Numbered from the stretch's first letter, positions 4,434 through 42,577 are shown. The stretch is DNA of 64,000 nucleotides from Podarcis vaucheri (GCA_965113315.1 OZ220363.1); one strand, 5' to 3'. Translations and numbers: made by a program. Notes: generated by a model from the sequence alone, not told the origin.

Positions 4434-6928
4434 CTATAGATGGGGAGGGAGAGAAAGGTAAGAGGAAGTCAGCAAAATGACGAAGACCAAGTAGAAATCT
4501 CAAACTGGTTTTTAAAAAATAATAAGAGCCTTGTGGCATCTAAAAGCAGAGGTGGCCAACTTACAGGCTATGTAAGAGGTCATCTGTGGTCTCCATAACC
4601 ACACTATATATTTTTTGAAATTATATTGCTGGTTTGTTTGTTTTTTAAATGATTCTTTCTATAGGTCCTCTGTTGTAATACCATGATGACAAAAAGTCCC
4701 TACAACTCCCTCCCCTCATTTTTATAATAAACAAATGTTTTTTACTGACTATTCCCATGGATCCTGATGTGATTTTTGGCTGCAGCCATTTTGACTCATG
4801 GGCAACACTTTGGGAGTCAGTGAGGTCCTTGGCCTCAAAGTAACTAGTTATCATTGCCTGAAGAATTAACAAGTTGATTTACAGCAAAGGTTTTTATGGA
4901 CCAAAATTTGCAAATGCTTTTGCCATGATAAACCTATTAATTTTTAATTAATAATTTTTCTAAGCGTCATAAAGCTATTTTTGATGCAGCAGACTAAAAT
5001 GACTGCTCCTCTGATAAATGCTTGAATACAAAATGAAGCAGCAGCTAATGTTGCATTTCTTAAGTTTCAGTGTAGGTTGCAGACGAGTCTTTCTGCCATA
5101 TAATTAGTGGGATTAGGGTGAGAGGAGAACAATTGCTAGTGAATGTTTTAGGCAGAGTCCTCCAATTTGCAGAAACTAGAGTCAATGGAAATAGGAGCAG
5201 TACACTGGGGGGGGGGGAATCCCCTCTTTTCAAATGGCATAGCAGGCAGCATTCAAAGTTGTCCAAAGGCACATTCACAATAAATCCCCAAGTTGACATT
5301 AGAGCACTAGGCAGTGGCTCTGAAACATTTACTGCCACAGACCACATGAAACCTGTTGAGGGTGTTGGCAGACCACTTAATGATTTTTCTGCCTGTCGTA
5401 GGAATTATAGGGTGCTGTGTGCTAGATGCTGTATGATTTAAATGCATTTTTATTGCTTCTTTTATTTCTTATATTGTACTGTATTACATATACAATGTTG
5501 AATATAAGAAATAAAAGAAGCATCAAAAGTACATTTAAAAATCAGTATATTTAAAGTGATCAGTGTGCCGGCTCCTGCCTTCTGCCACACACCCTGTGGA
5601 CCACCTGAATGAAGCTCATGGACCACAGTTTGGGGACAGAGCATCTCAGCAATGCAATCCTAAACATATCTCCTAAGTCACTAACAGTTCAGTTTGTAGG
5701 AATTGTGATCAGGTCTGCAAAAAACTTGCTCTGGCATAATAAGCACTAAGAGCTTACAAGGCCATCAACCTTCATACTTTGAAGTATCCTTGCTGAAGCC
5801 CAACATGTTTTGCAGCTTCAAGAGCAACTGAATACACCTCCATTATAGTTTAATTACATTTTTACATGAAAGATTTCTGGTCAGTCAGAAGAGAAGCACA
5901 CACTACACAGTCTATGTGGGCCAGCCCTATGTGGCACCAACAGGGTGCATAGAATTCTGTGCAGGAAAGACCCTTTGCCACTTTCCAAGAATCATGGTCT
6001 AGTTTCTCTGGAGATCATGGACTTTGGCCTGAAACACACACTCAAGACTTCTTGCTTACTTTTTTCCTGTCAAAAATCGCTCTCCCTGCAAAGCCAGTCC
6101 TCCCCCACCTCTAGCCTCCTCTTTTGGTTTGCAGCATACATGGCTGCAGTTTTGCAATCATGGACCACCACATGTTCTGTAATTGTTCTGCCCTTAAAAG
6201 TCCCAGGGGTGGCTGCTTGCAGGGAGCATCACCCTCATCTCGCTCCAGCTGAGTTAGTGCAAACTTCAGCTTTGCCTGCATGTTGCACAAACACATTTTG
6301 TGCATTCCCATAGCAATGGCTCTAAAAGGAAGCTGCCTTATACAGAATCACCCATCTCAGGGTTGTCAGCAGCCCCCTCGGTTTCCAGAGGGGTTTTTCT
6401 CCCACTCCTATCTGGAGATGCCAGGGAGTGAACAAAGCAGATGCTCTACCCCGGAGTGACTGCACTTCTCCTCCTCCCAAGTGCACTGGGCACTTGGGCT
6501 GACGCTGGTCCGCCAACAAGCGGCAAGAGGGGCTTGGGAGGAAGAAGAGAAGAGGCAGTTCAGCAACGGGGCGCCCTAAGGCCTGTCCCCACTTGGCGGC
6601 TGCTGGTTCTTTGTCTCCGCAGCCCAGGAAGCTAGAAGTTTTTCCGAACACCGCACCTCCGGTGGAGTTTGCGGAGTCGACTTCGATCCAATTCCTTGTC
6701 CCTTCAAATCTCGCCCACCTCCGCCTTTGTTACTAAGTTTATTCCAACCGCAGCCTATATATGCAAAAGGCTCCTCGATCGGGACTAACCTCCAGCCCAC
6801 TTTAGTGCACAAAACGAAGAAGCCACCGGCTCACGATGGGCGAGCCCCCAGCCTCCCCTCATCCCGCCGCGCATCTCCTGCTCCCTCCTTCACCTTTGGT
6901 CTCTCGCTCGGGGGCGCGCGTGTCGGGC

Positions 6929-7357
6929 TCAGGGCGCGCGCGCGAGGCGCCTGTCCCGGGTGGCGGCGGCCGCGTGCTCGGCGGCCTCCTGGCGGCTCTT
7001 GAAGTCCTCGATGGCGCGCTTGTTCTGGAAGTCGATGAGCGCCATGGTGATGGAGGCGTTCCAGCAGCTCTCGCCCGGGCACCGAAAGTCGATCTCCTTG
7101 CGGTCCGTCGTGACGATGGTGAAGTACACGTACTTGCCCGTCCGCTCCACGCAGTCCACCTTCTGGATGGAGCCGAAGCGCAGCTCCTTCCCGCCGCCGC
7201 CCCGGGCCTTGCCGGCCTCGGGCGAGAAGAGGCTCAGGCTGTCCTTGCTCAGCACCACCGCCTTCTTCTTCCACAGCTGGAAGAGGCTGTCGCTGCGCTT
7301 CTCCAGCTCGCCCTCGCGGATCACCTCCGACGGCGACGCGGAGCCCGGGCCCTTCAT
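6929..7357 (-). CDS. PHLDA2: Pleckstrin homology-like domain family A member 2, duplicate copy (copy B), 142 aa, CDS entirely in exon 1
   Basis: [32 protein letters not shown]...[49 protein letters not shown] has the PHLDA2 PH-domain signature ([18 protein letters not shown]; [22 protein letters not shown]). ATG at 7357-7355 in context AGCATGA, TGA at 6931-6929. Lies in a CpG island. Confidence 0.95.
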
Positions 7358-7529
7358 GCTGCTGCTGCCGCTGCTGCTGCTCCCCGCGCTCGCCAACAGA
7401 GCCGCCGCACCGAGATCGCCTCGAGGGACCAGCGCCAAGGCCACGCTCGCCCACCTGCCTGTCTTGCCTGCCTGTCTCCCGCCGGCTCCGCGACGCTGCT
7501 GGGATTCGCTGTGCGCTTTGCGAGAGAAG

Positions 7530-7620
7530 AGAACCATTTATGGCCTTGGAGAGACGTCCCAGACCCCGCCCTGCGAGCCCCGCCCCGCCTGCCGGCTCCG
7601 TCGCCCCGCCCACGCCAGAC
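7530..7620 (-). promoter_or_regulatory. Core promoter of PHLDA2 copy B (CATAAA TATA-like box, several GC boxes)
   Basis: Minus-strand CATAAA at 7542-7537, preceded by GGGCGGGG motifs. The same order and similar flanks occur at 41488-41530. Confidence 0.65.
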
Positions 7621-7843
7621 TGCCCCCCCCCCCGCGTTCTCTCTCTCAATTCCCCACGGTCTAACCCATCGTCGTTCAACTCTGCACTGACAATCTTCTT
7701 TTAGCCATCATCACCACTGCAGGTGTTGCCCTGCAATGGTCATTGCAAAAGTGGTGTGCAGGACCTGACAATGACTTTCCCATCCCCACCCCCTTCCCAG
7801 CTAGGAGTGCTGGCTTTCACTAGATTCTCGATTATTATTGCAC

Positions 7844-8176
7844 CCTCTGTGGGTTAAACCACAGAGCCTAGGGCTTGCCGATCAAAAGGTCAGTGGTTCA
7901 AATCCCCGCGTCGGGGTGAGCTCCCATTGCTCGGTCCCTGCTCCTGCCAACCTAGCAGTTCGAAAGCACGTCAAAGTGCAAGTAGATAAATAGGTACCGC
8001 TCCGGTGGGAAGGTAAACGGCGTTTCCATGCGCTGCTCTGGTTCGCCAGAAGCGGTTTAGTCATGCTGGCCACATGCTGTACGCCAGCTCCCTTGGCCAA
8101 TAAAGTGAGATGAGCGCCGCAACCCCAGAGTCGGTCACGACTGGACCTAATGGTCAGGGGTCCCTTTATCTTTTTT
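7844..8176 (+). mobile_element. Sauria SINE (Squam1-type), about 200 bp upstream of the copy B promoter
   Basis: tRNA-like head (GGTTCAAATCC B-box), body CCTGCCAACCTAGCAGTTCGAAAGCA...GTAGATAAATAGGTACC, 3' end GGTCAGGGGTCCCTTTA. Confidence 0.85.
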
Positions 8177-9838
8177 ATGGCTGGTAGCCGAACATGTGAC
8201 CTGATAACACTGAAAAACGTTGCATATACAGTATTTGTGATGGGCCATTCAGAGGCACAAACCCTTACTTCAGCCCCATTCAGGTGCATGCAGAGCTGGG
8301 TGGAAAGTGAATTGCCTTGGCAGACTTTGTTAGGTCCAGTAGATCCTGGTGGTATCACTGAAGGTGCATAAGCCTATAAGCCTGTGGACTGAGAGTCCTG
8401 CTTTTGGGAGAGGGGTTGGGGGGATTGACCCTGTCTCAGCCATCATGAATTCATGGAGTGCTGGATCTTGTCTGCAAAGGACTTTGATGTTGTAGTCAAC
8501 ACATGTGGAACATGCATGTCTGAGCCAGCCCCAAAGGGATGCTTCACAGTTGACATCTTAAGGAGTAAACCTTAAACGTTTTGTGAGTTATATGCAAAAA
8601 AGCGAGAACCACAAAGCTGCGTTTGCAAACGTGTATTATACACTTACTAAGTGCACTCAACAAAGCACTGGAATGAAGTGTGGCTCCATAAAATGAAAAA
8701 GAAAAGAAAAGAGGAAAATGAGACTGGCCTGTGGCAGACAAAAATAGAAAAGCAAAACAGAGAAATCCAACTGAAAATGTAGAAAAAGGAATATGTGATT
8801 GAAATAGCCCACAAATAATGGGAAAGATTATTGGCACTATGTTGCTGCAGATTGATACCGTGCACAATAAAACATAACATAAACACATCAACTGATACAC
8901 AGAATAATTATGAATTCACAAGGTGATTTTACAGGCACAAGTGCTGGACTTGTGGGTATACATGTAAACAGAGCTCTTCCCACTTCCCACTAATTCCAAA
9001 TGAGCTCAAGAGCTGCATAGCTGAATGTTTAAAAACTGCAACTGCATGCCCAAGTGTTTTGATAGGGATTAAGTGTCCCAGTCTCCTGAAGCCTTATTGT
9101 ACACAGACAAAAAGTTGTCGATTCCATGCCTTGGAAATGACGATAGGGACAAAGAAAATGACGCAGAGTACTACAGCAAGGGAGAAGATTAACAGCCAGT
9201 TCTTTAGTCTGCTGTTTCTTCAGCTTGTGTGGATGTTTTTTTTGGGATTGATTGTTCTCTGTGTTAAGAGAGTGAGCCACGAACCTGCAAGTCCCTGGTT
9301 TGACTTAGGTGAAAGCCACCTGCACCTCTCTCTGCCTCACAGCTTCAGTCCCTGCCACATCTGCAACATGGCAGATAATGGCCAGTTCCACTGGCAGAAG
9401 CCCACACAAGGGCTTCTGCTAGCGTAATGGGGCTTCCCCCCTCTTCCCCCGCCCCCCTCAAATTGGCTCTCAGTGGGTTGGGAGAAGCGCAGAGCAGTGC
9501 ACAGGAGAGCAGGGGGCATCGTTCCATCTGGCAAGCCAAAATGCTTGCACTGAAGAAAGGATTGCCATCATGCTATGCTGAATTTCACCCTCCAGTTTCT
9601 GACTCACAGTAGCAGTGGATAACCCATCTCCTGCCAGAAGTTGGACTCTAAACTCCCATAAGCCACAGCCAGTGGCGCTCCAATGTGGAATGCCCTGCCT
9701 AGCTACAGTATGTTCACCCACTTCCCCAACAGCAAAGTTTTTCTATGTTTTGGGGAGGAGTTTCCAGATGCCAGCCCTTTACGCTACAAGCTGATCCTTG
9801 TTGAGACTGAGCAGCTGAGTATTCGTCATTGGCACCCC

Positions 9839-9839
<1 letters not shown>

Positions 9840-9885
<46 letters not shown>

Positions 9886-10250
9886 AAAACATTTTTATTA
9901 AGTTTCCATTTTATATAAATATAACACACTCAAATTTTTCACCTTATATTCCACTCTCGCTAGCACTTGACTCCCCTCTCTCCCAGCCCATGATTGCCTT
10001 AAATTATATCTTTTAAAATTGCATTTCATATTTCCCTTCTTTACTTTCTATTCAATTCTGATAATCACAAAATTATATTAATTATAAATCAGTGCTTTCT
10101 ATAAACTATCAAGCTATAAATCAGTCCTGTCAGTGTTGTTAAATGTTTACAATTATATTTCAAATACTCTGTAAACTTATTCCAGTCTTTATGAAACGTT
10201 TGATCCATCTGCTTTCTTTTAGATGTCTGGCAAATACGTTTTTATTCAAC
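9840..10250 (-). mobile_element. L1-type LINE 3' end with (GAAA)n tail
   Basis: (TTTC)n at 9840-9883 next to a minus-strand AATAAA; AT-rich 3'UTR similar in style to 32580-32970. Confidence 0.5.
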
Positions 10251-10944
10251 TGGGCCCTTCAAACACCTTGGTCATTTTAAATTCTGATTTTTTATTTGCT
10301 GCTTTTCTGCAATCCTATCCATCAGCAGTGGGTTGGTTGGTTTCATTTTCTTTGTTCCCCTCAGAAATAAAGGCTCTGTGCAGCACACATGTAAAGCATA
10401 TTACCCCCCCCCCAATGAAACCTGTGGACTATAGTTTGTTAAGGGTTCTGGGAACTGTAGCTCTATAAGTGGTAAAATACAATTTCCAGGATTATTTGAA
10501 GGGTGTGTGTGCACTTTGAATGTATGGTGTGGATGCAGACAATCTCGCAAGTACACCAAATGGCTCTCTACGCCTTCAGCTCACCTTCCTTTATAATGCG
10601 ACAGTCTCTCTCCCTTCTGCTCCCCTCCTTCATTTTTCCTGCCAACATACTGCATTGCCCACCTCTTCCCCCTCATAGCCTTGACTTCAAGGCTGACCCA
10701 AGGCAATTTGTAGCCTGAGGCAAAAAACAAGATGACACCTTCCACTTTCCCTTTCCATATTCAGAAACTGCCTAGAATGGCATTTGACGCTTCTTACTTC
10801 AATACTGGCGAACAGCCACAAGGCTGCCCCACCCCACCCCCAGCATTCACGTCTAAGGCAGCCACCTCACTCTGCCTAACGGCAGGCCAGGCCTTGCTCT
10901 CCTTGCCTCCCTTCTCTTCAGACATTTTCTTCCCGCTCCTTCTT

Positions 10945-11070
10945 TGGCTCACTTGTACCTCGCAGCATGACTCGCCTCAGGAATGCAGCTGTTGCCTCGC
11001 CCACTATCTATGAGTCAGCGGCAGCCTTGGAATTCTCTCTGCAGGTTTCATTCAGCTGTTGGGCTGGGCC
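10945..11070. promoter_or_regulatory. Putative enhancer upstream of PHLDA2 copy B (paralog of 39913-40040)
   Basis: AGGAATG (TEAD-type) joined to CAGCTG (E-box), TGAGTCA (AP-1) at 11011-11017, and a second CAGCTG. Closely alignable to 39913-40040. Confidence 0.55.
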
Positions 11071-11333
11071 CCGGATAGTGGGAGAAGAAGAGGTAGGCCT
11101 TTCGAATGCAAATGCCACGGGAAAGCCGTTCTTTTGCTGCAGGAAACGTGGAAGACGACTTCACTTTTAGGTTCGCTAAGCTTAGCCGATCAACTCAGTC
11201 ATGCTTTTCTTGTGAGGATGCTTTCAGAGGAGGACATGGTCACCTCAATGTTTGCCCATTTGGGCTGGCTCCCTCACTGGTGTGTTCCCTTCCAAAAAAC
11301 CCAATTTCTTCATGGTCTAGGTTCATAGAGGTA

Positions 11334-11559
11334 CAGTGGTACCTCGGGTTAAGAATTTAATTCATTCTGGAGGTCTGTTCTTAACCTGAAACTGTTCTTA
11401 ACCTGAAGCACCACTTTAGCTAATGGGGCCTCCTGCTGCCACTATGCTGCCAGAGCACAATTTCTGTTCTCACCCTGAAGCAAAGTTCTTCACCCGAGGT
11501 ACTATTTCTGGGTTAGCGGAGTCTGTAACCTGAAGCGTATGTAACCTGAGGTACCACTG
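11334..11559. mobile_element. Tc1/mariner MITE
   Basis: CAGTGGTACCTC...GAGGTACCACTG with TA TSD. Confidence 0.85.
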
Positions 11560-11784
11560 TACATACATGTGCAAGCCAGTCACTTGTTTCCACAAGCCTC
11601 GCCAATCTCAGGAGGAGATTGGTGTGGTAGCATGTAAGCATTCAGAAATACGTTTTGGGTGCCTATCTCAATGCACAAATGGGTGGTGCCAATGCTTTGA
11701 TATGGAGAATGTATTTCATACATTCATTAATTAATTTGAAACATACACATCCTTCTATTCTTCAGAATGGTGCCAAATGTAGGC

Positions 11785-11985
11785 GAGGAGCTTGGTGTAG
11801 TTGTTGTACTGGGAGACCGGGGTTCAAATCCCCTCTTAGCCATGAATTTCACTGGGTGACCTTGAGCCAGGCACCGTCTCTCAGTCAAACGTACCTCACA
11901 GAGTTGTTGTGAGGATAACATGGAACAGAGAGAAAACCATGTATGCCACCTTGAGCGCCTGAGAGATGGGCGCTAAATGCCACAA
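11785..11985 (+). mobile_element. Old tRNA-derived SINE
   Basis: TGGTGTAGTTG A-box, GGTTCAAATCC B-box, and GGGTGACCTTG...ACCTCACAG..TTGTTGTGAGGATAA core. Confidence 0.7.
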
Positions 11986-12703
11986 CATCAGTAATAATAT
12001 GTTAGTGCTTTGGAACAATTTTTGTATTTGGACTATGTCTGTCCGAAGTTGTGTTCCCACCCTGTCCTGCTTTTGAGAGCTAGGAAGGTGACCAACAGCA
12101 GCCTTGGCCTCAAAGCAGTTAAAAGCTCAGCTACTTTCGGTACTGGAATTACAAGAGCACAGCAGTATCACTTGCAGCCACTACTTTAGCTGACAGGGCT
12201 GTGATGGCAGGAGGCTGAGGATTCATAAAATGGGAGAAGGGAAGGGTTCCCTTCCTTTGAAAGGAGAACCTGACTGCTCCAGGCATAGGAAAGGAGCAAG
12301 AAAGGCAGCGGGGGAAATGCCAAGAGTGAGAGCATTCAGAAATGAGACGAAACAAATTGAGGGCTGCAGGAATGCACGTCTACACATGCCCTGCCGTAGC
12401 TTGGAGGGTTAAATTATTAGATGTGCTTTTTCTAGGTGAGACACACACTTGCTATTTCATTTGTGCATTCAAGAGTTTGGTTTCCAAAACCCTCACCTCA
12501 TTGGTACTTTTTTATAGCTCCTGTCACGCATATGGCCATGTTTCTGGGGCTTTGAAAATAGCATAAACAAAATATCGTTTCAGTACTTTGGTTTTGGATT
12601 TTTATTGTAATGCTGACAGTATGTGTTTGTTCTGAACACTCATCCACCCAGATAGATCTATACACACTGATTAAGATTAATTTATCTACCGACTGCTTAA
12701 TAT

Positions 12704-13239
12704 TGTTATGAGTCTTTTTGTGGGGAAAGTAGGCTGTATGCTGAGACCCTTCTAATTCCTGGATCCAGCATGGATTCAATTGCTGGAATAGCCAGGCGAG
12801 CCTGGTAATGGCCTGCTAAGTGCAGGTTGTTAAGAGAAGAAAGGGAGTGGCTCTGTTCCAGAGGGCAAGTGGGTAGGTTTCCCTCCCTGAACTGTCTGTT
12901 AGTTAGAAAGACAAAAGACCAGAGTGGAGAGTAGAGTTGTGCGAGCCAGAAGCTGAAAGAAAAGCTACAGGCTGGAAAGGCAGAGAGAGAGGTATGCTTG
13001 ATTTCTGTTTGAATTAAAGGCTGCGGCTATGGGAGAAACAAGACCCTCTTTTAAGTGTTATTGCTGCAAACCCCTCCATCACAGGCTCAGGTTGTATATG
13101 TGTGTAAATAAACCATATCTCATAAAGACACCACCGTCTCTGCTGTGCCTCATTCCAAAAGGAGTCACAAATCCTGGGTAAGTGCCTGGAACCCCTGGGA
13201 TCTCACACTGCTCAGAGATTGGGGTCTAAGCAGTTTACA
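12704..13239 (+). mobile_element. Old solo LTR-like element
   Basis: Starts TGTTATGAG; contains AATAAACCATAT.TCATAAAGAC. Alignable to the reverse complements of 37303-37857 and 40505-41045. Confidence 0.65.
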
Positions 13240-13749
13240 AATTAAGAACCGTAAATTCACAAAGCTAAAACACCAGCCAGGGTAATGAACGGTGTAAATG
13301 TTTCTGACATTCTACAGAGGGTGTTACTACCTATTGCTATCAAAGGTGTTACCTACACAACCGTGTGTATAATTTTGGGGTACCAACATGCCAACAGTAA
13401 TCCAACACTGCAATACTATGCTTCTCAACTCAGATGTCAATCCTGTTGTGTTCAAGGAGGCTTATTTCCCAGGTAAGTGTGCATAGAATCGCCAGCCTAA
13501 ATTCCTAAGTCTTTGTTGGACAGCTTGCCAGCGAAATTCAATTCAGCGAAATATGAAAAGCTACATAAAAATTAATGTAACAGCTAGGATGGATGGAAGT
13601 GAAAAGGGACTTTGATTGAAGCAACATGTCATGCCTACTTTGTAGCAATGAAGTAATATTGGAAAGTGTGCTTGCAACAGTAGATACTGGGAAATAATTT
13701 CCATGACATCATTTTGATTCTTACTCTTACTTTCAATGACTTGCATCTA

Positions 13750-14280
13750 CTATAATGCACCCTGTGGGGGGCTGCCTTTGGAGAGTTTTCGGAAACTCCA
13801 GCTGGTTCAGAATGCTGCAGCCAGAATTGCTATCGGGGCCAGTTATAGAAAGGATGTGATCCTCATGTTTCAACAACCCCAACAACCAGTCTGTTTCTGA
13901 GCACCATTCATAGTGTGGGATATGCCATAGAAGACTCGGGTCCCAGATTATCTAAAAGACTGCATTCTCCATATAAGTCTCCCTGGGTTTAAAGATCCTT
14001 TCCGTCTGTCCCACCAATGACTATAGCTTGGTTTTTAATGTTTTTGTCCTTGTGTTTTACTACATTTTATTGTATTTCTTTTATTGTATTGTATTTTTAC
14101 TACATTTTATTGTATTTGTGGGAGGCAGTGGAAGACAGAGCAATGGCGTGCTCTGGTCCGTGGGTTCACGAAGAGTCGGACACGACTAAATGACTAAACA
14201 ACAACAACAACAACATTGTATTTCTGCTGTTGTTGTGAGCCACCTTGAACATCATTTGACAGAAAGGCAGGATGCAACGT
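13750..14280 (+). mobile_element. Degenerate L2 3' fragment, interrupted by a BovB tail
   Basis: CGGAAACTCCAGCTGGTTCAGAATGCTGCAGCCAG (RKLQLVQNAAAR), typical of the L2 ORF2 C-terminus. Confidence 0.7.
14118..14214 (+). mobile_element. Severely 5'-truncated RTE-BovB insertion
   Basis: Matches the 3' end of 26409-27378 (AAGAGTCGGACACGACT..(CAA)n); TSD ATTGTATTT on both sides. Confidence 0.85.
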
Positions 14281-17200
14281 TTAAAAAAATGCACACATAA
14301 ATTGGAAACCATTTCACAGTATCTTATTATGGCACCAACATTTAATGCTTTATAGGCAGACAAATGGGCTTCATAGTCTATGGGAAATCTATCCTTAATG
14401 CATGTTAATGAATGGATGGCAAAACCCTGCCATCATTTCCCAAGACCTTCTCCAGTTCAAATGATTTGTATTCATGTGTGTATTCAAAGCAGAATACCAC
14501 ATGGACTATCAACTGTGTCTGTTTGTTTGGTGGACCCAGTAAACTGAATACCTCCAGGATGAGTCCTTGGGTATTTTATACATGGGAAGAGTTGCATTTT
14601 TGAAAGACTTAAACAAAGGAAATGGTGGCGTTTATTTGCCTGGACTGTGAGAACTTTCCTCTGCCTGAAGCCATCAACATTAAATAACCTAATCAGCCAG
14701 TATACTAATATTTATCTGATATGCATACTTCCCCCTAAGCAACCTTTAAGTCTTTCTCAATTACTGTTACCTAACACTGCACTGTACAAATCTTTTAGTG
14801 AGAGGAAACTTGCCATTTCCCATAAAAAAGGGATCATCTGCATGCTATGTATTCATGAGTTTGTTAATTGTGAAAATGAACATAGAGGTTCTTTCACAGA
14901 GTGTCCACTCAGAATCTCCAAAGACGAAAGAAAAGCCCTCATCACGTATTAAGTTTATTACTGGATTATGTCTGTGCGTCAAGGGCAGCTTCAAACATAA
15001 TGCATTTCCTGCGAGGGAGCATGAGCTCTATATGCAGAACGCACACACGGTGATTTCACAGCGTGTAGATGCACTGAAATAAATGAGTCTGCAGTGTATC
15101 GGATGTTGATGTCAACACAGACACCTGACCAATACCAGTGGTTATTCATACACACAGCATTTCCAGGGATATATATATGGTTGTTCATCTTGCATGTATC
15201 ATGGATATAATGTGTGTATCACTTCTTGAGACGTGACACAGAACCGGCCAACAAATATGTCTGGGGATCTTTGCTTTAAAATGCATGACCAGGACGTGTC
15301 TTTGTCTTAACTTCCACTGGGGTTTGTTGTATGCTCACATAAACCATGAAGAGTTGTAGAGGTCTTTTATTCAGCAACAGTTTTGAATTTTTGTCACACC
15401 TGACAAGTGCATTTTAATAAATTCTGTGCCAAAATTTTCTCCCACCTTTTTTTTTTATCACCACACTCCATTAATCAGTGGGAAAAATAACTGCATTTGA
15501 AAATTATCAAATGAAATGGTTGATGAAAATCTTATGGGTGGGGTATAGTTTCTTTTTGTTTGTGTGGCACTTGCCTTATTTATGAGGTGGCCAAGGGTGT
15601 CACAGAATTCTGGATAAAGGTTTACTGGAAAGAAAAACACACAGTACCATTGTTACCTTGTGAGAATAAATTCAAAACCCCTGCACTCATTGAAATTCTA
15701 AAAAAATATCAAGTGGTTTGAGGCTGAGGCAGAAAATTTGAAGGCTCTTTCTCAGAGGAAGAAATTTCAATCAGAAATGTTGCCACCACACTAGTTCGAA
15801 TACTGTAGCAAATATTTTATCTTTTGTTTACATTTTTATTTTATTATCTATCTTTCTATCTATCCTCGTATTCCAATGAAACTGATTACTGCTATGATGT
15901 CTTCCAAACATCCCAGTAAGATTTATGAGTTTAAGAGAATATTTATCACTTACCCCCCAACATTTTTCAAACTCCCCAAAATAACTTAAAATAATGACAT
16001 TTCCAAAATATGCAGAGAATCAGCTGTAAAAGCCCCGCACAACCAATAATTAACAGTATCTAATTTATACGTTCATTTCAACTGATACTGTCAAGTACTA
16101 TTGGTACTGGATTTCCATTCTCCCTCCAACCCTCAGTCTGCTAAATGAGATAAGTCTTGATATTTCATCCTGCTATTCCAAACCAGAGGTAGGGAACCCC
16201 TCAGCCATGGACCAAGATGGCCCATTGAGGTGTCCAATTTGGCTTGTGAAGCCATTTACCCCAAAGAAGGTCCACCCACCAATCAGTTGACATCACTGAT
16301 GGGCAGGAGAACAGGGTTTAACCCTGCATTGGCTGTGCACCCCGCTCCTTATAGAGGGATTCCCAGAAGAATCTGTCCCACTCCTACTCACTCCACTAGA
16401 GTTGCTTGTCCACTCACTTGAAGTAGAAGCATGTCCTGCTTTACACAGTGCTTTTAAGGCAGGCTCCATGCTCCCATTTCAGCCTTTGCAAATCTCCACA
16501 CTCCCCTTTTTAAACACCCCAGGCTTAAAAGGGGAGTGTGTTGAGGCTTGCAAAGCCCTAAAGGGGGAGTGGGGTTAGGGATGCTCACCCCGTTTGGCTC
16601 ATATGTCCAATCCCAATAGGGTTACTTACTACTGCTGTAAACGCATTGAATGTCTAAAACCAGAGATGCCCAGGTCTTTGCACCATCTTTTAATGCTAAA
16701 TGGGGCCATCTGATAGCAGGGGCAGGAGGGCAGGTGCTGGCTCCCTCCCCAGTATAATTCAAGTTCACACACCCTACCTTGCAACTCTCTCCAACCTGTC
16801 TCCTTCCAATTAAAGGGTGTGGCTTAATTTTTCCTACTGACCCTGTGCTGTAATTATAGAGATCTCTGAACCAGTGCAGCGCGGAAAAATGTTCAGGAGG
16901 AAAAGTAAACGCCTAAGTTGTCCTCATAGTAGGGATGTTCAAATGGGACCCCCCCCCCAAAAAAAACAGGTGAATTGGGTGGTGGGATTGAACCTACTGT
17001 TTTTGATGTTGTGTTTACACCAGTTGCACCTCCTTGCAGCAGTGCATCCAACATGAACAGGAAGGAGCGCTATGAGCACGTCTATGCATGTGTGTAGGGT
17101 TCTTATGTGCAAAGAGGAACCTTGGTCAACTGGGGTTCCCTTCTGCACACCTTAGGCATCACCCTGATACACAACCTGCAGCTCAGTCAAAGGCAGGGCC

Positions 17201-23146: not shown

Positions 23147-23147
<1 letters not shown>

Positions 23148-23195
<48 letters not shown>
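23148..23195. repeat. (ATT)n microsatellite
   Basis: Direct observation. Confidence 0.95.
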
Positions 23196-23196
<1 letters not shown>

Positions 23197-28183: not shown

Positions 28184-28236
28184 TAAGTAAACATACACAG
28201 GAGTGGATGGAATGACTGCTCATATGAACCTAAGTA

Positions 28237-32116: not shown

Positions 32117-32970
32117 TGGTACATGACACCAGTCAAGTTTGCAAAAATCTATCATTTGCCCGATAATAAATGTTGGAAATGTAAGGAAACTGAAGGTACA
32201 TTCTTTCACCTTTGGTGGACGTGCCCCAGGATTAAGGCTTTCTGGGAAATGATATATAATGAATTGAAAAAGGTATTTAAATATACCTTCCTGAAGAAAC
32301 CAGAGGCCTTTCTCCTGGGCATTGTTGGCCAATTGGTGCCGAAGAAGGACAGAACTTTTTTCATGTATGCAGCAACAGCAGCAAGAATACTCATCGCAAA
32401 GTATTGGAAGACACAAGATTTACCCACTCTGGAAGAATGGCAAATGAAGGTGATGGACTACATGGAACTGGCAGAAATGACTGGCAGAATCCGTGACCAG
32501 GGAGAAGAGTCGGTGGAAGAGGATTGGAAGAAATTTAAAGACTACTTGCAGAAATACTGTAAAATTAATGAATGTTAAAATGATGTTGGAATGGAAAATA
32601 AGTGGTATTGGCAAAAAGATTATTAAGAATATGCAAATATGGATTGACAATGGTTGAAAATACATAGTTATAATAGGCTAAAATACTGAGTAAAGATAAA
32701 TGATAGAGGGTAAGGATTTGCTGAAAGGAATTTTAAACGGGAATACAAAAGGGGAGGTGTGAGGAAGCCAGGAAACAAGTAAATGAACTATAAGACATGA
32801 AATACTGATTTTTCTTTTTTCTTAACTCTTTTTTTTTACTTTTTGTGTGATTTGTCTTTGGTATTTTTGTATCCTTTTTTTCTTTTTTCTACTCTATTTT
32901 TTATGTTTAAATTTTGTAACCTTTTTATTGTTTCTAAAATTCTAATAAATATTATCTTAAAACAACAACA
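32117..32970 (+). mobile_element. Young 5'-truncated L1-clade LINE (ORF2 CCHC C-terminus, 3'UTR, tail)
   Basis: CWKCKETEGTFFHLWWTC zinc knuckle, ARILIAKYWK; AATAAA plus (CAA)n tail; 18-bp TSD ACAATATACTRTATCTAT (32099-32116, 32971-32988). Confidence 0.9.
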
Positions 32971-34681
32971 ACAATATACTGTATCTATACTGCCAAAATA
33001 ACACATCTCTAAGGCCATGATCTTTCACAGCCATGATACTGTAGTGGTTTGCAGCTTGAGTGAATGTGATCCTGAACTTGGTAAACTGAAAGTGGTTTGG
33101 CTCATTGAATTTTTCCTTCAGTGGGCTTTGCATCAAACACCTTGCAAATTTCCTTGCAGGCAATTTGCTCCCAGTATGTGGTGCAGGAGGGTTTCACCAG
33201 GGAAAACAGTGTCATGTTTAAAATAAGGAGTCATATCACTCTTTGGAAAAGTGAACTGTGTGGAATTGTGCCAAGTGCCAATCATCCAAAGCAGTTTGCA
33301 GGAAATGCTGCGAGCTGGTCATGCCATCATAATCAGGAGAGTCCACAGAACAGGAATTGCAGGCCAGCTTGCCAGGAATTTGAAGTCAATGCTAAGAATG
33401 TACGTAGTGTGAGAGTGTGTCAAGGATACAGCAGAGCTGAAGTTACAAATGTGCAGTGATCTTCATGCACCTAACTATCCTATAGTCTTGGAATATAAAC
33501 ACAGTAGGGTAGGAACTTTATGTTGTTGGTTTTTGGGGGGCGGGGTAGAGAAATGGTTGTAGTTAAAGTATTTGTCCCCCCCCCCCCCAGTCTGGCCTGT
33601 GACAGCTGCTATTATTATGTAGATCCGAATGTATTTTTTCTTAGACTTGGAATGTGCTGGTTGCCTGCATTTGTAAGTAATCCAGTTCCCAAAGCACCAA
33701 CCCAGGCAAGCTACATGGAAAGTAATGGAAGTTTTTAATTGCAGTGTCAGGTGGTGACAGTAATTGTCACAATCCCTGGACTCTGGCTCCTCCCTTAATT
33801 AGGCGGAAGCAGCTCTGCAAATCCACTCTCCCAACGAGCAAAGTATCATATAAATAGCACAGCCTTCCTGAACATGGTGTCCTCCAAATGCTGTTGAACT
33901 ACAATTCCCATCATGCCACCATTACCAGAGGAGTCGGCAGAGCAGGATTTTCCTGCGGCTGACACTCTGGTTTCTATTTAGCCTACTGTATGAAGATAAG
34001 AATCACATTTGTTACTCCGCCCACATTTGTCTCTAGTCCCATGCACTAAATACCTCCGACCCTATTCTTCACTACCGTAGAACATTTCCTGTCGGCAAAA
34101 GTGACCCACAGGTCAAAAAAAGTCCCCTACCCCTGATCTATAGTGTAAACATTTTAGTACAGCCGCCATTATTTTTATTTTTATTAAATTTATTGGCTGC
34201 TTTTTTGCCACAGGCAACTTAAAAGAACTTACACACAGAAATCCACCGAAAGAGCTGCAAATCCCAGAATGCACAGGCCCAATCCAGCTCCAGGCTGCAA
34301 CCTTATGCCCACTTCCCTGGGAGTAAGCCCTACTGATTCTCTGAGGAGACGTGTATAAGACTGCACTGTAGTTGTGCACAGTGGATGAATGGTCACAGAT
34401 GGGAATAGATATCCCCACCCACAGCAAAAGACACAGGCAGCCACCCCAGGGATGCTTAGATGCATGGGCTGCATACTTGGAAGGCAGCTTTTACAGCTGC
34501 CTTTTCTTTGTCGCTTTTCTTTATCTTTCTTAATGACCAGCATGCCTGAGTCTAGGAGGCACATAGTCTTCTGCTCTGTTAACGGAGAAATCTGAGGGCT
34601 CCCTTGGACAAAAAAACAAGAACACCAGCTAGGAATACCAGAGCAAAACAGCAGCCAGTAGGCTTGGTCTTTATTGAAGAC

Positions 34682-35225
34682 TGTCGTGACAGGACTCCCA
34701 CCTGCCACCAGGTGAAACAAGAAGGAAGCCCCCCCCCCCCCCGAACAAAAGAGAACCCAAAATTTTATTAGCTGCTAATCCCCATATTACACCCCCCCCA
34801 AACTACATCACTAATACATCATGGTTACATCATGAAAGGGTGGCAGTAATCTGAGCATCCTGGACCCTGCCCAATGGTTCCCCTTGCCCTCCACCAAACA
34901 CCCATAAGTGTAACAAAAGAGACATTTACATTTTCCTGTTTCCCAGCCACATTAACCACACCATTTTCTCTTCATCTGGGTTTGTTATTTCTGGAATGGC
35001 TACCTGTCTGGCACTCAGGTATCAGGATGCCAGGAATAATCACTCAGGCAGAGGGGCTGCTGAGTAGCTGAGCTCACATATCTATATGAATTTCTGAAAG
35101 TTTCCCAGTGAGCCAGTACATAGACACATTTATCAGTGAATTCTAACATTTGGTATTGTGCAGCAGAGGCCCTTTGAAAAGATAGGAAGAAACTGTGATG
35201 AAGTGTTTTGTGGGGACAAGTCACA
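34682..35225 (-). mobile_element. Possible solo LTR
   Basis: TG...CA termini and a minus-strand AATAAA near the left end; no clean TSD. Confidence 0.4.
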
Positions 35226-37302
35226 AAAGTCACATAAGTGATTGTGCTTATTTTGGTGGTGGGCTGCATGTGCATGATATCTGCTGGAGGGGCACTCCCC
35301 CCCACACCTATACATAAATTCCTGCAACAGCTCTCTGTATGAACATGGGTCACAGACACACATGCCGTCCTGTTTGCTTTTCTGTATTATACCGGCTTGT
35401 TTTTTCCAAAAGCCACAGTCCCAGTTTCTGCTCCCTCCCCCTCCCCTGTCTTCTCCATGATCTGTGTTGCCAGCTATAAAACAATCTCTTTCTCATGTCT
35501 GTGTGCACATCTCTCTCGATGCCACATTCCTGGCCTGGTGAACTGGGCAATAAATACCTCTCTTTCCGCAGTAATGAAAAACCTGCCATTCAGGATTTGC
35601 ACTTGCACTTTGGACCTTTATTCCTTTGGCTCAGCAGATAATTCTGAATGGTCGGTCCTTTTAGCGTTTCTTTGCTACTGCCATTAAAACGTTTAGATTA
35701 AATCTACACTTTGAGAGCGAAAGCGAAACAATCCTCAAGTGCCAATTCGCTTTGCACGGTCTATGAACACCTACAGGGAGCCATCAAAATGTCACAAAAC
35801 AGTGGGCAAGATTAAGGCTGGATTCTTTCTCCAAGAAGGCAGGACTGACCCCTGACACTGGATGTAAAGGAAGGAGCTTTGACCAGGGCAGTCATAGGGG
35901 GAAACTATTATGAAACTATGAAAGGGACACCTTTCATCTGCTCATCCTACCAACCAGGGAAGAAGCCTGCGTAACTCGGACTCTCTCATACTGCACTTTT
36001 GAATCCTGCTTGGCCTTAGCAAAAGGGCAAGGTGGTTAATGATAGGATATGTTGGTTTCTACTGTCCTAACGAAAACTTAAGTAAATTCATTGACGGGGC
36101 TGTGGCAAGACAAGGCGATCCCATGAGCTGACCCCCTCCCACAGAACTTGCAAAGCACCTGCCGCACCCAAGAACTCCCTGCTGCTGTGAAAACAGTGCT
36201 TTTGTACATGCCTTCGACTCTTTCACTGCTGCAGTGCAGAAGCCACATTGGCTCTGTCGAATACAATTGGCCTAGTTACCACTTTCCAGCTGTCTAGCCA
36301 GCAGGCAATCGTAGGGTAAGGTCAACGAGAAGGCCACCCTTTAAGAACCAGCCTTTACCTTCCATCCAGGGGTGGGTTGGGCAGCAGGCAGATTATCCTG
36401 CAGTCAACACACCCCTCTGTGATGGGCAGGGGTAGGGTTCCTCCTTTAAGCTCCTTACTTGTTCTGCACTTCACTCATCTATTTGACTCCAAAGGACCAA
36501 AATTTATTAAAAGGTGGGTTGACGGCCATTGTGTGTTCTCACCAGAATCGCTTATGGAAACCATATTTTTTAAAAAACCCAGAAACCTAAATAACATCTG
36601 GCTCTGTAATTGCCAGCTACACTTGCACCAGAGCAGCCAAGTGCAAGCATGATTTGGAAAAAAAATATTGCTGCTTTAAATGTAAAAATGAATTTTTTAT
36701 AATAGAAACCTGTATTTTCAATGCATTTAAGAAGCAGGAAAAGGCAAGATTCCTTCAGCTAAAAGCCTTTCACCCTGTCCTGCATGACATTTGCTCATGC
36801 AGGACCTCCCTGCCCCCGCCCCCAAACACACCCCAAAAATGAATACAGCTCCAAGATTCATTTGTTTCAATGTGTTCAAAAATGCTGCCTGGATTCTAAT
36901 CTTCTTAATTCCCTTTCCTGTTTTTGAAAAACTTACTTTTATCAGAATTGATGGGCTCCTTTGTCAACTGGGCATGGATTGAGAAACCAGCCAACTGTTA
37001 AAATGTAGGCAAATCCGGCTGTCAAAGCTCATGCAGGTGTACAGGATGGAAGCAACTTCTGCTTCTCTGCATGATAGAATGCCCTTGTGTGAGATATGCT
37101 TTCAACACAGGAGATTCGACATACTCATATACCAACTCATATACCAGCAGAAAGGTTGTTCATAATGGAGCTTTGGAGCTTTTGATTATGGAGCTGGTTT
37201 CAGGTTAAGTAGCCCAAACTTTAGAAACTAGACAATTTCTGGCACACCAATTATTGCATTTCCCATTCTCAAGACTCCTCCATTTCTCAATAAGCATGAT
37301 GT

Positions 37303-37857
37303 TGTTGTACACCATCCCAATCTCCAAGTGATACAAAACTCGAGGGATTCCAGGTAGCGCTTATCCAGGGTTCATGTTTCCTTTGGAATGAGATATAGTG
37401 GAAATGGTTGCGTCTTTATGATATATGGTTTAATAACACATATATACCACCTGAGCCTATGATAGAGGGGTTCACAGTGTTAACATTCCAAGAGAGTTTT
37501 GCTTCACCCCTAGCCACAGCCTTGGATGTGAGCAGAAATCAGGCATCTCTCCTTCACAGGCTTCAGCCTGCTTCTTCCTCCAGCTTCTAGCTCTCTCACA
37601 CACAACTCAACTCTGGTCTTTGTCTTTTCTAACTACCTACCAATCAGTTGTGAGAGGGTGGGCACCCATTTGTTATCTGGCACATAGCCACTTCCTTTGT
37701 TACCTTAATGACCCATATTTAGAAGACCATTATCACACCAGAAAGCTAGCCTGGCTATTTCAGGAATTTGAACCATTGCTTAGATTTTAACACTTGCTGT
37801 ACCCAAGCATTAGAAGAGTCTTGGCATACAGCCTTCCCCACCACCAAACTCATAACA
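37303..37857 (-). mobile_element. Old solo LTR-like element (same family as 12704-13239)
   Basis: TG...CA termini, 4-bp flanks ATGT/ATAT, similarity to the two other copies. Confidence 0.65.
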
Positions 37858-37877
37858 ATATCCTCAATGCGATGAAT

Positions 37878-38515
37878 AGGGATGGAGAAGACATTTGATT
37901 TTGTTTGCATTTAAATGAGAACCTACCTAATTTGCACTTCTCAATCCAATATGTGAACTGAAACACAGGTATTCTTCAAAATCCACACTTGTCTGAATTT
38001 TGAAGTACAGTTCTCCAACCAAAGAGTACGTGCAAAATGCATATTGGGGTAAATGTGCATAAAACGTGTGTATTAGTGAAAATAACATACAGAATGCAAG
38101 ATATTAGGAGAACTAGCTTGCAATAATTTGTCTATTAGTCAAAACTGCCTACAAATATATGCTTATTACTATAGTTTTGCACTAAAAAGCTGACAAACCT
38201 TGATGAGGATTTATGTTTAATTTTAAAACGCTGATTGCTGCAGAAATGTGGAGAACTGAATTTAAGACTCGAAAAATGAGAAACTTAAGCTGTGTACACA
38301 CCATACCTTTAAAGCACATCTCAAACATGTTCATCCCCACCGCAAGGATCCTGGGAACTGTAGTTTGTTAAGGGTGCTGGGAATTGTAGCTATGTGAGGG
38401 GTAAACTACAGTTTCAGGGTACTTTTTGTGAGTTTTTTGTGTGCATGTGCATGCACATGCTTTAAGTGTATAATGTGTACACAGCCCTAGAGAACCAAAA
38501 TGACAGATTTGTCCA
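37878..38515. mobile_element. Old DNA-transposon-like repeat with a nested palindromic MITE (38289-38487)
   Basis: Reverse-complement similar to 59-410; the insert has GCTGTGTACAC...GTGTACACAGC termini. Confidence 0.55.
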
Positions 38516-39912
38516 GTGAGATACTATCAGTTCATCACCCCAGAAATGCTGCTGCCTCTTGCTTCACAGCTGTGGATCCCCAAACAATTCCCCAAACCCC
38601 TTATGCAGTCTGCTTTGTTCAGGACCACCCAACAACAAAAAACACGAGCAAGTGTAGGTAGAGGTGTAGGCTGACTGGAGGAACAGCACTGGCATCATCT
38701 GAATGACCAGTATGTGCTAGTATGAATTGGGTGCGGCCTTGGAAAGCAGCACAATACCGAAAGTCAAGAATCCCATAGCAAACGTCTGGTTCCCAGGAAA
38801 GAAAACCCATTATTTCAAACAGGACATCTGGAGCAGGGCGTGTGCAAACATGTGCCTGCCTGCACACCTGACCTTTGCTCAGCCTTGATCTGGGTTTCAT
38901 TCATGCCTTCTTTCTGTTGCCTTTCCAAGTGCACAAAGTCAATTCAAAGCCTGTCCAAGGGCTCTGACTGCAACGCAGCCCGTTTGTACTGAAGGTAGCT
39001 GGATAAAAATATAAAAAGGGTAGGGAGGGAAGTGGAAACGTTGATTTAAAAAATAGTGAGACATTGAGGGACTCTCCTGCGGGTGTGGGCACCATTTAGC
39101 AAAAGTTGGTTGCAATTAAATCCTATGGACAACAATGGAAAGGGAATGCACTTAGCTGTGTGGCTAATTTTTGTAAGATTGTGTACCTTCCTTCCCCGTT
39201 CCTCATTTAGGGAGCCAAGGCTCATGGGTGGCTGCTGATGACTAAAAGCTGTGCAAGAGGGGCACTGTGTTCTGCTCTCAGGTCAGAAGGCGATGGACAC
39301 AAGAGTGGGGAACTGGGCCTGGCCAGCAAGCCAGATGCTTATCTTGACCACCACCTCCAGGTCAGGTATGACACGTGGGTGGAGCCACCCACTTTGTTAG
39401 TCACCTGACATCACTATGACACCAGCTGACTCAACTTTACCCACATGTGGGCAATGGCATGGTGCTTTGCGCTAAGAGTCCGTTAAACCAGTAGGAGAAC
39501 TGGGTGGCTGCCTAGGGTGGCAAACTTCCAGGGTAGCCAACCTGATGCCAAGTTTCTGTGTTCAGGTTTTTATTAAAGTTTTTTCATGACACAATATAAA
39601 GATAGAAAACTAATGTAAATTAGAAAATGAAAACAAAAACTGCTACAAAAAGTAAAAATAAGGTATGATGTCCTCTCTTAAAGGTAGTTCTTAACTTTCA
39701 TAGAAGGTAGTAGCCCCTCCCAGCTCTTATCTGGGATCTTTCCTTTCTCCTTCCAGCCTCTCACCCTGGGAACCTGACAGAAGTTTCTGGACTACAACTC
39801 ACATCATCCCTGACCATTGGTTGTGCTGGCAGGGGCTCTTGGGAGTTGTAGTCCACCATTTTCTGGAGGGCACCATGTTGGTTACCTCTGCTCTCGCCCT
39901 CACCCTCGCTCC

Positions 39913-40040
39913 CTGGCATGCCTGCACTTCACAGGATGACTGGCCCCAGGAATGCAGCTGTTGCCTAGCCCACTATCTACGTCTGAGTCAGCTGCAGCCT
40001 TGGAACGCCTCCCAGATTTCATTCAGCTGCTGGGCTGTCT
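39913..40040. promoter_or_regulatory. Putative enhancer upstream of PHLDA2 copy A (paralog of 10945-11070)
   Basis: AGGAATGCAGCTG at 39948-39960 and TGAGTCA at 39984-39990, in the same motif order as the 10945-11070 element. Confidence 0.55.
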
Positions 40041-40504
40041 GGCTCATGGAGGAGGGCTAGGCCTCTTTATCTTAAGTGTCGTTCCTTCAGTTTCCTTTGC
40101 TTCAGGAAACCTCAAGCCTGCGATAGGCCGCCTCATATGTTCACACGCATAGAGCACAAATTATTTAATTCTTTTCCACTCTCTATGAGGAATGTTAATT
40201 CCTCAAAAGTAGGGTTCACATATGTCCTCTTTTTCCAGGACAGGTCCTTTTTATGGGTAGAGTTGTCATAGCGATCCATAGTTAAAAGCAGAAATCGGCA
40301 AATGTGTCCTCTCTTTTGCTCTTCAAAATATGATAACTCTACAAAAGTGGCTCTTGCATTTTACAACTGAGCCCTACCATTAGGCTAGAAAGCATAGCTG
40401 GCTGCTGATGGGGGAAAAAGGGGGTCAGAGCTGTCCCAGCCCTTAGAAAGTGTAAGGTTCCTACCTGGTCTGCTCCCTCTGCCAGTGGCAGAGAAGCAAA
40501 AGCC

Positions 40505-41045
40505 GCAATCGGCACCAATTTTGGGCAAGATACTCCAGGGATTCCATGCGCTTACCTAAGGTTCTGCTTCCTTGGAAAGAGGGACAGCAGAGACTGTGGA
40601 GTCTTTATGATATATGGGTTACTTATACATATATCATATAACCTGATGCTACAACGGACGGGCTCATAGCATTAATGTCACACAGAAGGTCCTGCATCTC
40701 CCATAGTCATAGCCTTGGATTCAAGCAGAAATCAAGCATGGTTCTCATTCACTAGCTTCTGCCTGCTTCCAGCCCAGCTCACACCGCTCTGCATTTTTGT
40801 CTTCTTCACTACCAGTCAGGTGAGGGTGGGTGGGAGCCCACCAACCATTTCCCCTCTGGCACAGAACAACCTCCTTTGTTATACTATGGACCCATACTTT
40901 GGTGGTGATAAGGACCATAGTTCAGCAATGGAGTCCTCCATTAGATTTTAACCCTTGCTGAATCCAGGACCCCAGCGATTACAAGAGACTCAGGCATCCT
41001 GCAGGCTAACACAAGCTTTCCCCCCAAAAGTCCTTAAACTCAGCA
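40505..41045 (-). mobile_element. Old solo LTR-like element just upstream of the copy A CpG island
   Basis: GTCTTTATGATATATGG...AGCCTTGGAT..AGCAGAAATCA shared with 37303-37857. Ends are approximate. Confidence 0.6.
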
Positions 41046-41379
41046 GCCTAATTTAGTGTGTGTGTGTGTTTGTGTGTAGATCTCCTTGCTGATCTACTGC
41101 AAGCCACGCAAGAGACCTCTCAGCAGATCCTGACCCACTGCCAACGGATGGAACAGGAAACCCCCTCGAGAACTTTAATGGGGGGGGGGGGATAAGAACA
41201 CAAGGCAAGTCCAACACGTCAGCAGATAGGAAACGAGCTGCTCTCTAAGGCTACGGGAAAGCGACCTGGAGGAGGGAAAGGCAGGGAGGATCTGCTTTGA
41301 CAGCCGCCGGTGTCAGGCGCCTCCCGGCCCCGAGGGTGGGCTGAGGATCAATCCGCTTCCGCCGGGAGGCCGCGGGAAG

Positions 41380-41530
41380 GGGGGGCGGCGGCGGCGGAGG
41401 GTTGGGCGAAGGGCTGAGCGAGCGAGTGGGCGGCAGGAAGAAGCGCCCAAGTCATCCCGGGTCTCCTCGCGAGGGCGGAGGTGCGCCGGCAGGGCGGGGC
41501 CTGGGGCGGCCCCAAAGCCATAAAGGGCTC
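41380..41530 (+). promoter_or_regulatory. Core promoter of PHLDA2 copy A (GC boxes, CATAAA box at 41519-41524)
   Basis: GCAGGGCGGGGCCTGGG...CCAAAGCCATAAAGG matches copy B GCAGGGCGGGGTCTGGG...CCAAGGCCATAAATGG. Confidence 0.65.
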
Positions 41531-41745
41531 AGCCGGCTCTTCGCCCGCAAGAACGCGCAGCAGCCCGAGCAGGAGCAGCAGCAGCGGCGTCGCGGAGCCG
41601 GCTGGAGAGGCCAGCGTCCCCGTCGGAAGACAGGCAGGCAAGCAAGACAGGCAGGTGGGCGAGCGTGGCCTTGGCGCTGGTCCCTCGAGGCGATCTCGGT
41701 GCGGCGGCTCTGTTGGCGAGCGCGGGGAGCAGCGGCAGCAGCAGC

Positions 41746-42177
41746 ATGAAGGGCCCGGGCGCCGCGTCGCCGTCGGAGGTGATCCGCGAGGGCGAGCTGG
41801 AGAAGCGCAGCGACAGCCTCTTCCAGCTGTGGAAGAAGAAGGCGGTGGTGCTGAGCAAGGACAGCCTGAGCCTCTTCTCGCCCGAGGCCGGCAAGGCCCG
41901 GGGCGGCGGCGGCGGGAAGGAGCTGCGCTTCGGCTCCATCCAGAAGGTGGACTGCGTGGAGCGGACGGGCAAGTACGTGTACTTCACCATCGTCACGACG
42001 GACCGCAAGGAGATCGACTTTCGGTGCCCGGGCGAGAGCTGCTGGAACGCCTCCATCACCATGGCGCTCATCGACTTCCAGAACAAGCGCGCCATCGAGG
42101 ACTTCAAGAGCCGCCAGGAGGCCGCCGAGCACGCGGCCGCCGCCACCCGGGACAGGCGCCTCGCGCGCGCCCCCTGA
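41746..42177 (+). CDS. PHLDA2: Pleckstrin homology-like domain family A member 2, syntenic copy (copy A), 143 aa, CDS entirely in exon 1
   Basis: Same PH-domain signature as copy B. ATG at 41746, TGA at 42175-42177. Tail-to-tail with SLC22A18, as in mammals. Confidence 0.96.
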
Positions 42178-42577
42178 GCCCGACACGCGCGCCCCCGAGC
42201 GAGAGAGTGACCTGAGGTGAGCGAGTGCTGCCGTCTTGGTCTCGTTTGCCCCCTGACTTCGCCCCCTCCCCGCCTCCCCATCTTCACTCATTGATCCTCT
42301 GAGTCGATTAATCTGAATCAAAACCCCAAGACCTGTTCTGCTTCATAGGGCCTGCTGGATCACAACCACTCCGTCTATAACCAGCGCAACTTTGGGAAAC
42401 TTGTATGCAATTCAGTGGCCTTCCCCTTCTTACCCCATACAGGATTTATCGTGGGTTGAGAAAGCTTATTTGGTGGAATCTGTTGCGCATAACCTCCCTG
42501 TGGGCAGCAGAGCTTGGTTCTAGATGATGATTTTGCAGATCATTGACTAACCGTAGATTAGCGTCAGTAACACACTA

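Follow-up and report, generated by a model that had tools for sequence, protein, structure and literature searches.

Why should two genes whose promoters, introns and 3'-terminal exons have drifted far apart share a coding sequence (CDS) that is almost letter for letter the same? The question is raised by a 64,000-nt stretch of DNA from the lacertid Podarcis vaucheri (the window, by which the whole stretch is meant throughout), which carries two copies of PHLDA2, a small two-exon gene, in inverted, head-to-head arrangement about 34 kb apart. PHLDA2 is a dosage-sensitive growth regulator and is, in eutherian mammals, expressed from one parental allele only. The observations set out below point to an old inverted duplication of PHLDA2 combined with interlocus gene conversion limited to exon 1, and we put the probability of this reading at about 85%. 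An earlier interpretation made from the DNA alone (the sequence-only reading) had proposed such a duplication, with exon 1 homogenised by conversion between the inverted copies, and the homogenised tract, its flanks and individual residues of the protein all lend support to that proposal.

The Pfam PH domain (PF00169) is found in both predicted proteins at threshold, with scores of 25.1-25.6 bits against a cut-off of 25.1. Of the best database matches of both proteins, which span lizards to fish, almost all carry the name PHLDA2, the Lacerta agilis match being at 98%. The products of both copies, A and B, are small proteins that consist essentially of a single PH-like domain, as is characteristic of PHLDA2. 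Each copy has one intron, with the entire open reading frame (ORF) in exon 1 and an exon 2 that contributes only 3' untranslated region (UTR); PHLDA2 of the tammar wallaby is likewise a two-exon gene (PMC3170258). The splice junction of copy A is confirmed by a Podarcis lilfordi gene model (P0047) that reads through the join between exon 1 and exon 2.

In a self-BLAST of the window, the match between 6900-7477 and 42206-41632 is by far the strongest repeat, at 97.8% identity when gap columns are counted. Alignment of the two tracts with MAFFT leaves only two substitutions in 572 aligned bases (p = 0.0035) and three indels, all in short repeats, and thereby reproduces exactly the set of differences that the sequence-only reading had listed for 6900-7477 and 41628-42206. 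The first substitution, T/G at 7342/41761, gives Ser6 (TCC) in copy A and Ala6 (GCC) in copy B, and the second, G/C at 6935/42171, is synonymous (Ala, GCG/GCC). The indels consist of a CAAG present only in B (41643-41646), a GCAGCA present only in A (7381-7376), and a GGC present only in B, in the poly-Gly run (about 7202 / 41902-41904). Among lacertid paralogs this run is 3 to 6 residues long, and its length is not tied to either paralog type; the A-type gene has 4 Gly in the window and 6 in P. lilfordi, which amounts to microsatellite-like behaviour inside the converted tract.

The near-identity ends abruptly on one side and more gradually on the other. At the 3' edge, identity drops at 6899/42207 from 100% to about 44%, which is no more than a forced alignment gives. 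This edge lies 6 nt before the GT donor in A (6893) and 10 nt before it in B (42217), as expected from the claim that similarity collapses just ahead of the splice donors. A second claimed collapse, in the distal 5'UTR, holds in that identity does fall, but the edge there is less sharp than had been described: a B-only insert of about 20 nt is followed by a 24-nt block with 2 mismatches (7499-7476 vs 41584-41607), upstream of which identity is about 82%, with many indels (50 gap columns), across the TATA-like box and the GC box. Beyond these two boxes, no alignment between the copies was found. On the other side of the tract, the introns are unalignable, with 44-50% identity at their start and ends, and exon 2 of A and exon 2 of B are 69% identical over 402 aligned bases, a Jukes-Cantor (JC) distance of 0.40. 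The introns had also been said to carry different transposable elements; in a partial check of this point, intron B was seen to contain a fragment of a short interspersed nuclear element (SINE) at 42755-42813, and self-BLAST found no repeat in intron A.

The placement of these edges raises the question of what served as the template for homogenisation. Both lie within the transcribed exon, one downstream of the putative transcription start sites (near 7510 in copy A and near 41553 in copy B) and the other 6-10 nt ahead of the splice donor. If a partial cDNA or transcript of one copy had acted as the repair template, this would explain why the tract falls wholly in exon 1. Yet DNA-templated conversion that is limited by the loss of homology in the flanks predicts the same edges. 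Furthermore, the intron has been kept in both copies and exon 2 has not been homogenised, whereas a spliced template would tend to alter these, and no sign specific to reverse transcription is present. An RNA template is accordingly regarded as unlikely, and conversion between the two DNA copies as the preferred account of the tract.

A different concern is that the identity might have been created during assembly, the copies of exon 1 being in truth more different and having been made alike when short reads were used for polishing or when the consensus was called. Polishing is known to perform poorly on GC-rich repeats of about 0.6 kb. Nevertheless, the copies have not been collapsed, as they retain two substitutions and three indels, and reads from copies as diverged as the flanks would map uniquely and would not be mixed. 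In addition, the same near-identity recurs, with species-specific residues, in five other independently assembled lacertid genomes and in more than 15 other lepidosaur annotations. Such an artefact is therefore very improbable.

Chance as the origin of the tract identity is excluded. The tract differs at 2 of 572 positions, as against 18% in the promoter and 31% in exon 2, and with flank divergence taken as the background, the probability of at most 2 differences in 572 is below 1e-46, while that of at most 1 synonymous difference in 99 sites is 4e-8 to 4e-15. The identity extends to silent positions, as had been claimed: there is 1 synonymous difference in 99 synonymous sites, 1 of the 71 fourfold-degenerate codons differs, and the UTR inside the tract (about 110 aligned nt of 5'UTR and 29 nt of 3'UTR) holds no substitution. 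The composition of the tract is equally distinct. GC content at third codon positions (GC3) is 98.6%, overall GC is 70%, and the ratio of observed to expected CpG is 1.0 (1.02 in the copy A tract), compared with a GC of 44% and a CpG ratio of 0.28 in the introns and a GC of 37-38% in exon 2. GC and GC3 are thus raised in the tract relative to the diverged parts, as in other instances of concerted evolution, and this is the composition that GC-biased conversion would be expected to give.

These silent sites also bear on whether conversion is needed at all, or whether strong purifying selection on the protein, together with extreme GC3 and codon preference, could have kept the copies alike. PHLDA2 is highly conserved across vertebrates, and at a GC3 of 98.6% twofold codons have no freedom in their third base. 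However, only 1 of the 71 fourfold codons differs although both G and C are allowed there, and the aligned UTR of the tract (roughly 110 nt on the 5' side, 29 nt on the 3' side) is invariant, in contrast to the adjoining, functional promoter boxes, which have diverged. Derived amino-acid states, moreover, are common to both copies within a species and different between species. Selection without conversion thus has as slight a probability as the assembly artefact, and the contention that purifying selection alone would not suffice is upheld, since it leaves the identity of silent sites and UTR unexplained.

If conversion has been at work, the coding exon should group by species and the flanks by paralog, and comparison with other lacertids shows this to be the case. 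Every annotated lacertid has two PHLDA2 genes. Their variable residues track species, not paralog: the two window copies have Gly5, the two of Lacerta agilis have Ser6, both copies of P. raffonei and of P. lilfordi have Gly6, and both of Zootoca have Asp12. The flanks could be followed through two mis-annotated models of P. lilfordi. In CAI5763274 (P0128), the start has been placed upstream of the TATA box, so that promoter and 5'UTR are translated; 32 of the 33 codons of the resulting N-terminal extension correspond to the upstream region of copy B only (41407-41505), after which the model continues in another frame. In CAI5763276 (P0047), a frameshift after the PH domain and read-through of the splice junction into the 3'UTR exon have produced a tail of which 82 of 86 codons correspond to exon 2 of copy A, as against only about 30% for exon 2 of copy B. 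The B-type promoter and the A-type exon 2 of P. lilfordi are 95-97% identical to the window's own. The distance between exon 2 of A and exon 2 of B (JC 0.40) is about 20 times the difference between the window and P. lilfordi in exon 2 of A (at least 4/258 nt), and the duplication is therefore far older than the split between the two. Flanks thus group by paralog and coding residues by species, matching what conversion predicts. The clustering test that the sequence-only reading had proposed was run here in reduced form: the grouping of flanks covers one related species, P. lilfordi, and the species-wise grouping of the coding exon is at the level of proteins.

Species-wise clustering of paralogs would also result from birth and death, with recent, independent re-duplication in each species yielding a near-identical exon 1, but this is the least probable of the alternatives, given that the promoters, introns and 3'UTR exons of the two copies are complete yet deeply diverged, that each type of flank, A and B, recurs with hardly a change in P. 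lilfordi, and that 0.36-0.57 of the 31-mers of the copy-B locus, which is mostly non-coding, occur in sequencing runs of four other organism labels.

Old duplication with conversion limited to exon 1 can be put in mechanistic terms as follows. The whole two-exon PHLDA2 would have been duplicated in ancient times, in inverted, head-to-head orientation. Double-strand breaks in the GC-rich, CpG-island exon 1 would then repeatedly have been repaired with the other copy, on the same chromosome, as template (non-allelic conversion), each event resetting about 0.58 kb (proximal 5'UTR, full CDS and 29 nt past the stop) to near identity. The flanks would be too diverged to form a heteroduplex, which would pin the tract to the segment kept similar by purifying selection and hence place its edges just outside the CDS. 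GC-biased repair of the heteroduplex would drive third positions almost all to G or C. Repair of this kind is the probable mechanism, and GC-biased conversion probably accounts for the high GC3. Both copies are presumably expressed; small, probably RNA, runs of a related organism hold 0.17-0.23 of the copy-B locus, which is about its exonic share and is offered as a hint, not as a claim of expression. The geometry has a further consequence. Each promoter is separated from its own intron and exon 2 by one of the inverted tracts, and a crossover within the tracts would invert the 34-kb spacer and thereby swap the promoters between the two 3'UTR contexts, so that the spacer may be polymorphic for inversion.

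The pair does not seem to be confined to lacertids. Two PHLDA2 proteins are recorded in more than 20 lepidosaurs, nearly every annotated one, often under consecutive accession numbers. Two entries are found among anguimorphs, skinks and allies (Varanus, Elgaria, Lerista, Tiliqua, Hemicordylus, Rhineura), iguanians (Pogona, Anolis carolinensis, A. sagrei), snakes (Notechis, Pseudonaja, Thamnophis, Ahaetulla, Vipera, Crotalus) and geckos (Heteronotia, Eublepharis, Gekko kuhli, Sphaerodactylus). In 22 lepidosaur species pairs, a species' own two proteins differ by 0-6 amino acids (aa), while for deep lineages the nearest other species differs by 4-22 aa. Similarly, in a maximum-likelihood (ML) protein tree the two proteins of a species are sisters in every deeply separated species, with support of 100/97 for Sphenodon, 100/99 for Gekko, 100/94 for Elgaria, 98/88 for Varanus, 98/89 for Anolis sagrei, 96/84 for Zootoca and 84/82 for the window; the tree has no resolution among closely related snakes and within Podarcis. 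The two models of Crotalus tigris agree in the translation of the proximal 5'UTR and diverge farther upstream, and one of the distal extensions (MAPIRL...) is found in Vipera and Ahaetulla too, which suggests that snakes have the same tract layout and an old pair. When the upstream extensions of snake, skink, gecko, turtle and bird models were compared with the upstream regions of A and B in the window, the matches were weak and did not discriminate between them.

Concerted evolution of PHLDA2 thus seems to extend to nearly all lizards and snakes, and a single ancient duplication with continuous homogenisation would be the most economical reading of its distribution. We infer, tentatively and at somewhat short of even odds, that the pair arose once, before the radiation of squamates or possibly of all lepidosaurs, tuatara included, more than 200 million years (My) ago, and that conversion of exon 1 has continued in every lineage since. 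If so, it would be among the longest-lived two-copy systems of concerted evolution in vertebrates.

Several considerations weigh against these conclusions. A GC3 near 100% makes twofold sites converge in the absence of conversion, and as a result the argument from silent sites depends on fourfold positions and the UTR only. The cross-species test rests on proteins and on two mis-annotated gene models of one relative, informative coding sites within lacertids number only 3-4, and the sequences of both copies are known from assembly alone. As for the wider distribution, the two entries of Sphenodon are UniRef records that come without locus information, two protein entries may not equal two genes in some species, and independent duplications in separate lineages could also account for the pairs outside lacertids.

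The features of the locus are collected in Table 1.

Table 1. Features of the PHLDA2 pair in the Podarcis vaucheri window (positions counted from its first nucleotide).
Feature	Position	Strand	Details
Copy A, CDS	6929..7357	-	142 aa + stop, wholly inside exon 1
Copy B, CDS	41746..42177	+	143 aa + stop
Copy A, homogenised tract	6900..7477	-	last 120 nt of 5'UTR, whole CDS and 29 nt of 3'UTR
Copy B, homogenised tract	41628..42206	+	counterpart of 6900..7477
Copy A, proximal promoter and exon 1 start	7478..7573	-	GC box 7573-7564; TATA-like CCATAAATGG 7543-7534
Copy B, proximal promoter and exon 1 start	41490..41627	+	GC box 41490-41499; TATA-like CCATAAAGGG 41518-41527
Copy A, intron	4434..6893	-	GT 6893-6892, AG 4435-4434; unalignable with intron B
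Copy B, intron	42217..44365	+	donor GT 42217; acceptor 44365 inferred via alignment with copy A
Copy A, exon 2 (3'UTR only)	4000..4433	-	AATAAA 4024-4019
Copy B, exon 2 (3'UTR only)	44366..44810	+	ATTAAA 44785-44790
Spacer between the divergently transcribed copies	7574..41489	.	about 34 kb, includes both upstream regions

Outside the two CpG-island exons of PHLDA2 no further gene was detected, in the spacer or elsewhere in the window: the ten longest other ORFs lack a Pfam match, and an Rfam search that took in both outer flanks as well as the spacer returned no family. None of the expected neighbours of PHLDA2 (CDKN1C, SLC22A18 and NAP1L4) was recognised in the 64-kb window by these general ORF and Pfam scans, which did not include a dedicated synteny test.

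Some other elements of the window are shared between the two halves of the locus. An element of about 110 bp occurs upstream of each copy, at 10954-11066 (about 3.4 kb from A) and 39923-40037 (about 1.6 kb from B). Its two occurrences are 84-88% identical, which makes them more conserved than the promoters, and contain GGAATG, CAGCTG and TGAGTCA motifs; they are in direct orientation, on the plus strand, though the genes are inverted. The element could be an enhancer kept from the duplication, or a repeat fragment. The second exons (4000-4433 and 44366-44810) contain near-identical islands of 20-40 nt, including ATTTA-containing stretches, which may be conserved mRNA-stability or regulatory elements.

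The SINE-like family to which the intron B fragment (42755-42813) belongs has further copies at 3126-3341, 11331-11561, 28234-28441 and 45232-45439, the copies being 85-93% alike. An origin in the old duplication was weighed for the two that lie downstream of the second exons (3126-3341 and 45232-45439) but rejected, because their mutual identity of 85.6% is below the 89-93.5% that they show to other family copies in the window, so that they look independently inserted. A second dispersed repeat, with 73-75% identity among its three copies in the spacer (12767-13203, 37338-37780 and 40528-40769), is probably an older transposable element.

Lizards and snakes apparently keep two PHLDA2 copies that supply the same protein from different promoters and with different 3'UTRs. 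The pair offers a compact case for how conversion tracts become pinned to a selected, GC-rich exon, and it also informs how GC-biased conversion drives GC3 towards 100% and for how long a family of two copies can escape divergence. There are practical consequences as well: gene trees will falsely infer a separate, recent duplication of PHLDA2 in every squamate species, and short-read variant calls in exon 1 are confounded by the second copy. In the literature searched on PHLDA2 in reptiles, we found no report of duplication or conversion; the duplicates are visible in public annotation, and their concerted evolution appears to be undescribed.

Long-lived concerted evolution of two copies, over more than 100 My, is known from the mammalian pairs BMP8A/B, DDX19A/B and TUBG1/2, each of which has exactly two paralogs in all examined species (Carson & Scherer 2009, PMC2720389). 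As in those pairs, PHLDA2 has two paralogs that resemble each other more within than between species in only a part of the gene, and a raised GC3 in that part. Unlike them, with tracts that run over several exons and introns, the PHLDA2 tract is a single exon segment of about 0.58 kb that takes in the whole CDS and no intron, and the pair occurs in Lepidosauria and not in mammals, inverted and head-to-head. Mammalian HSPA1A/HSPA1B (PMC5865164) provide a second parallel, being an old duplication in which conversion and purifying selection have kept the CDS near-identical and the differences lie mostly in UTRs and flanks. As cited in that paper, the inverted Drosophila hsp70 genes form a comparable stress-inducible pair (Bettencourt & Feder 2002), and conversion has been linked to high GC (Kudla et al. 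2004). Hsp70 genes, in contrast to PHLDA2, are intronless, have a CDS of about 2 kb and are unrelated in function, whereas PHLDA2 has a 3'UTR intron just before which its tract ends.

In the human FLNA-EMD inverted repeats and the palindromes of the Y chromosome, conversion proceeds from arm to arm, and the arms, which extend over many kb, match at more than 99% throughout, non-coding sequence included. The PHLDA2 pair has the inverted orientation and intrachromosomal conversion in common with these, and there, too, a crossover between arms would invert the spacer. It is nonetheless no large palindrome with multi-kb arms identical throughout, as near-identity is limited to 0.58 kb, neither introns nor upstream regions can be aligned, and the remainder of each copy is anciently diverged. 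The PHLDA2 pair is therefore a clean but familiar kind of concerted evolution, the same kind as that of BMP8A/B, DDX19A/B, TUBG1/2 and the Hsp70 pairs.

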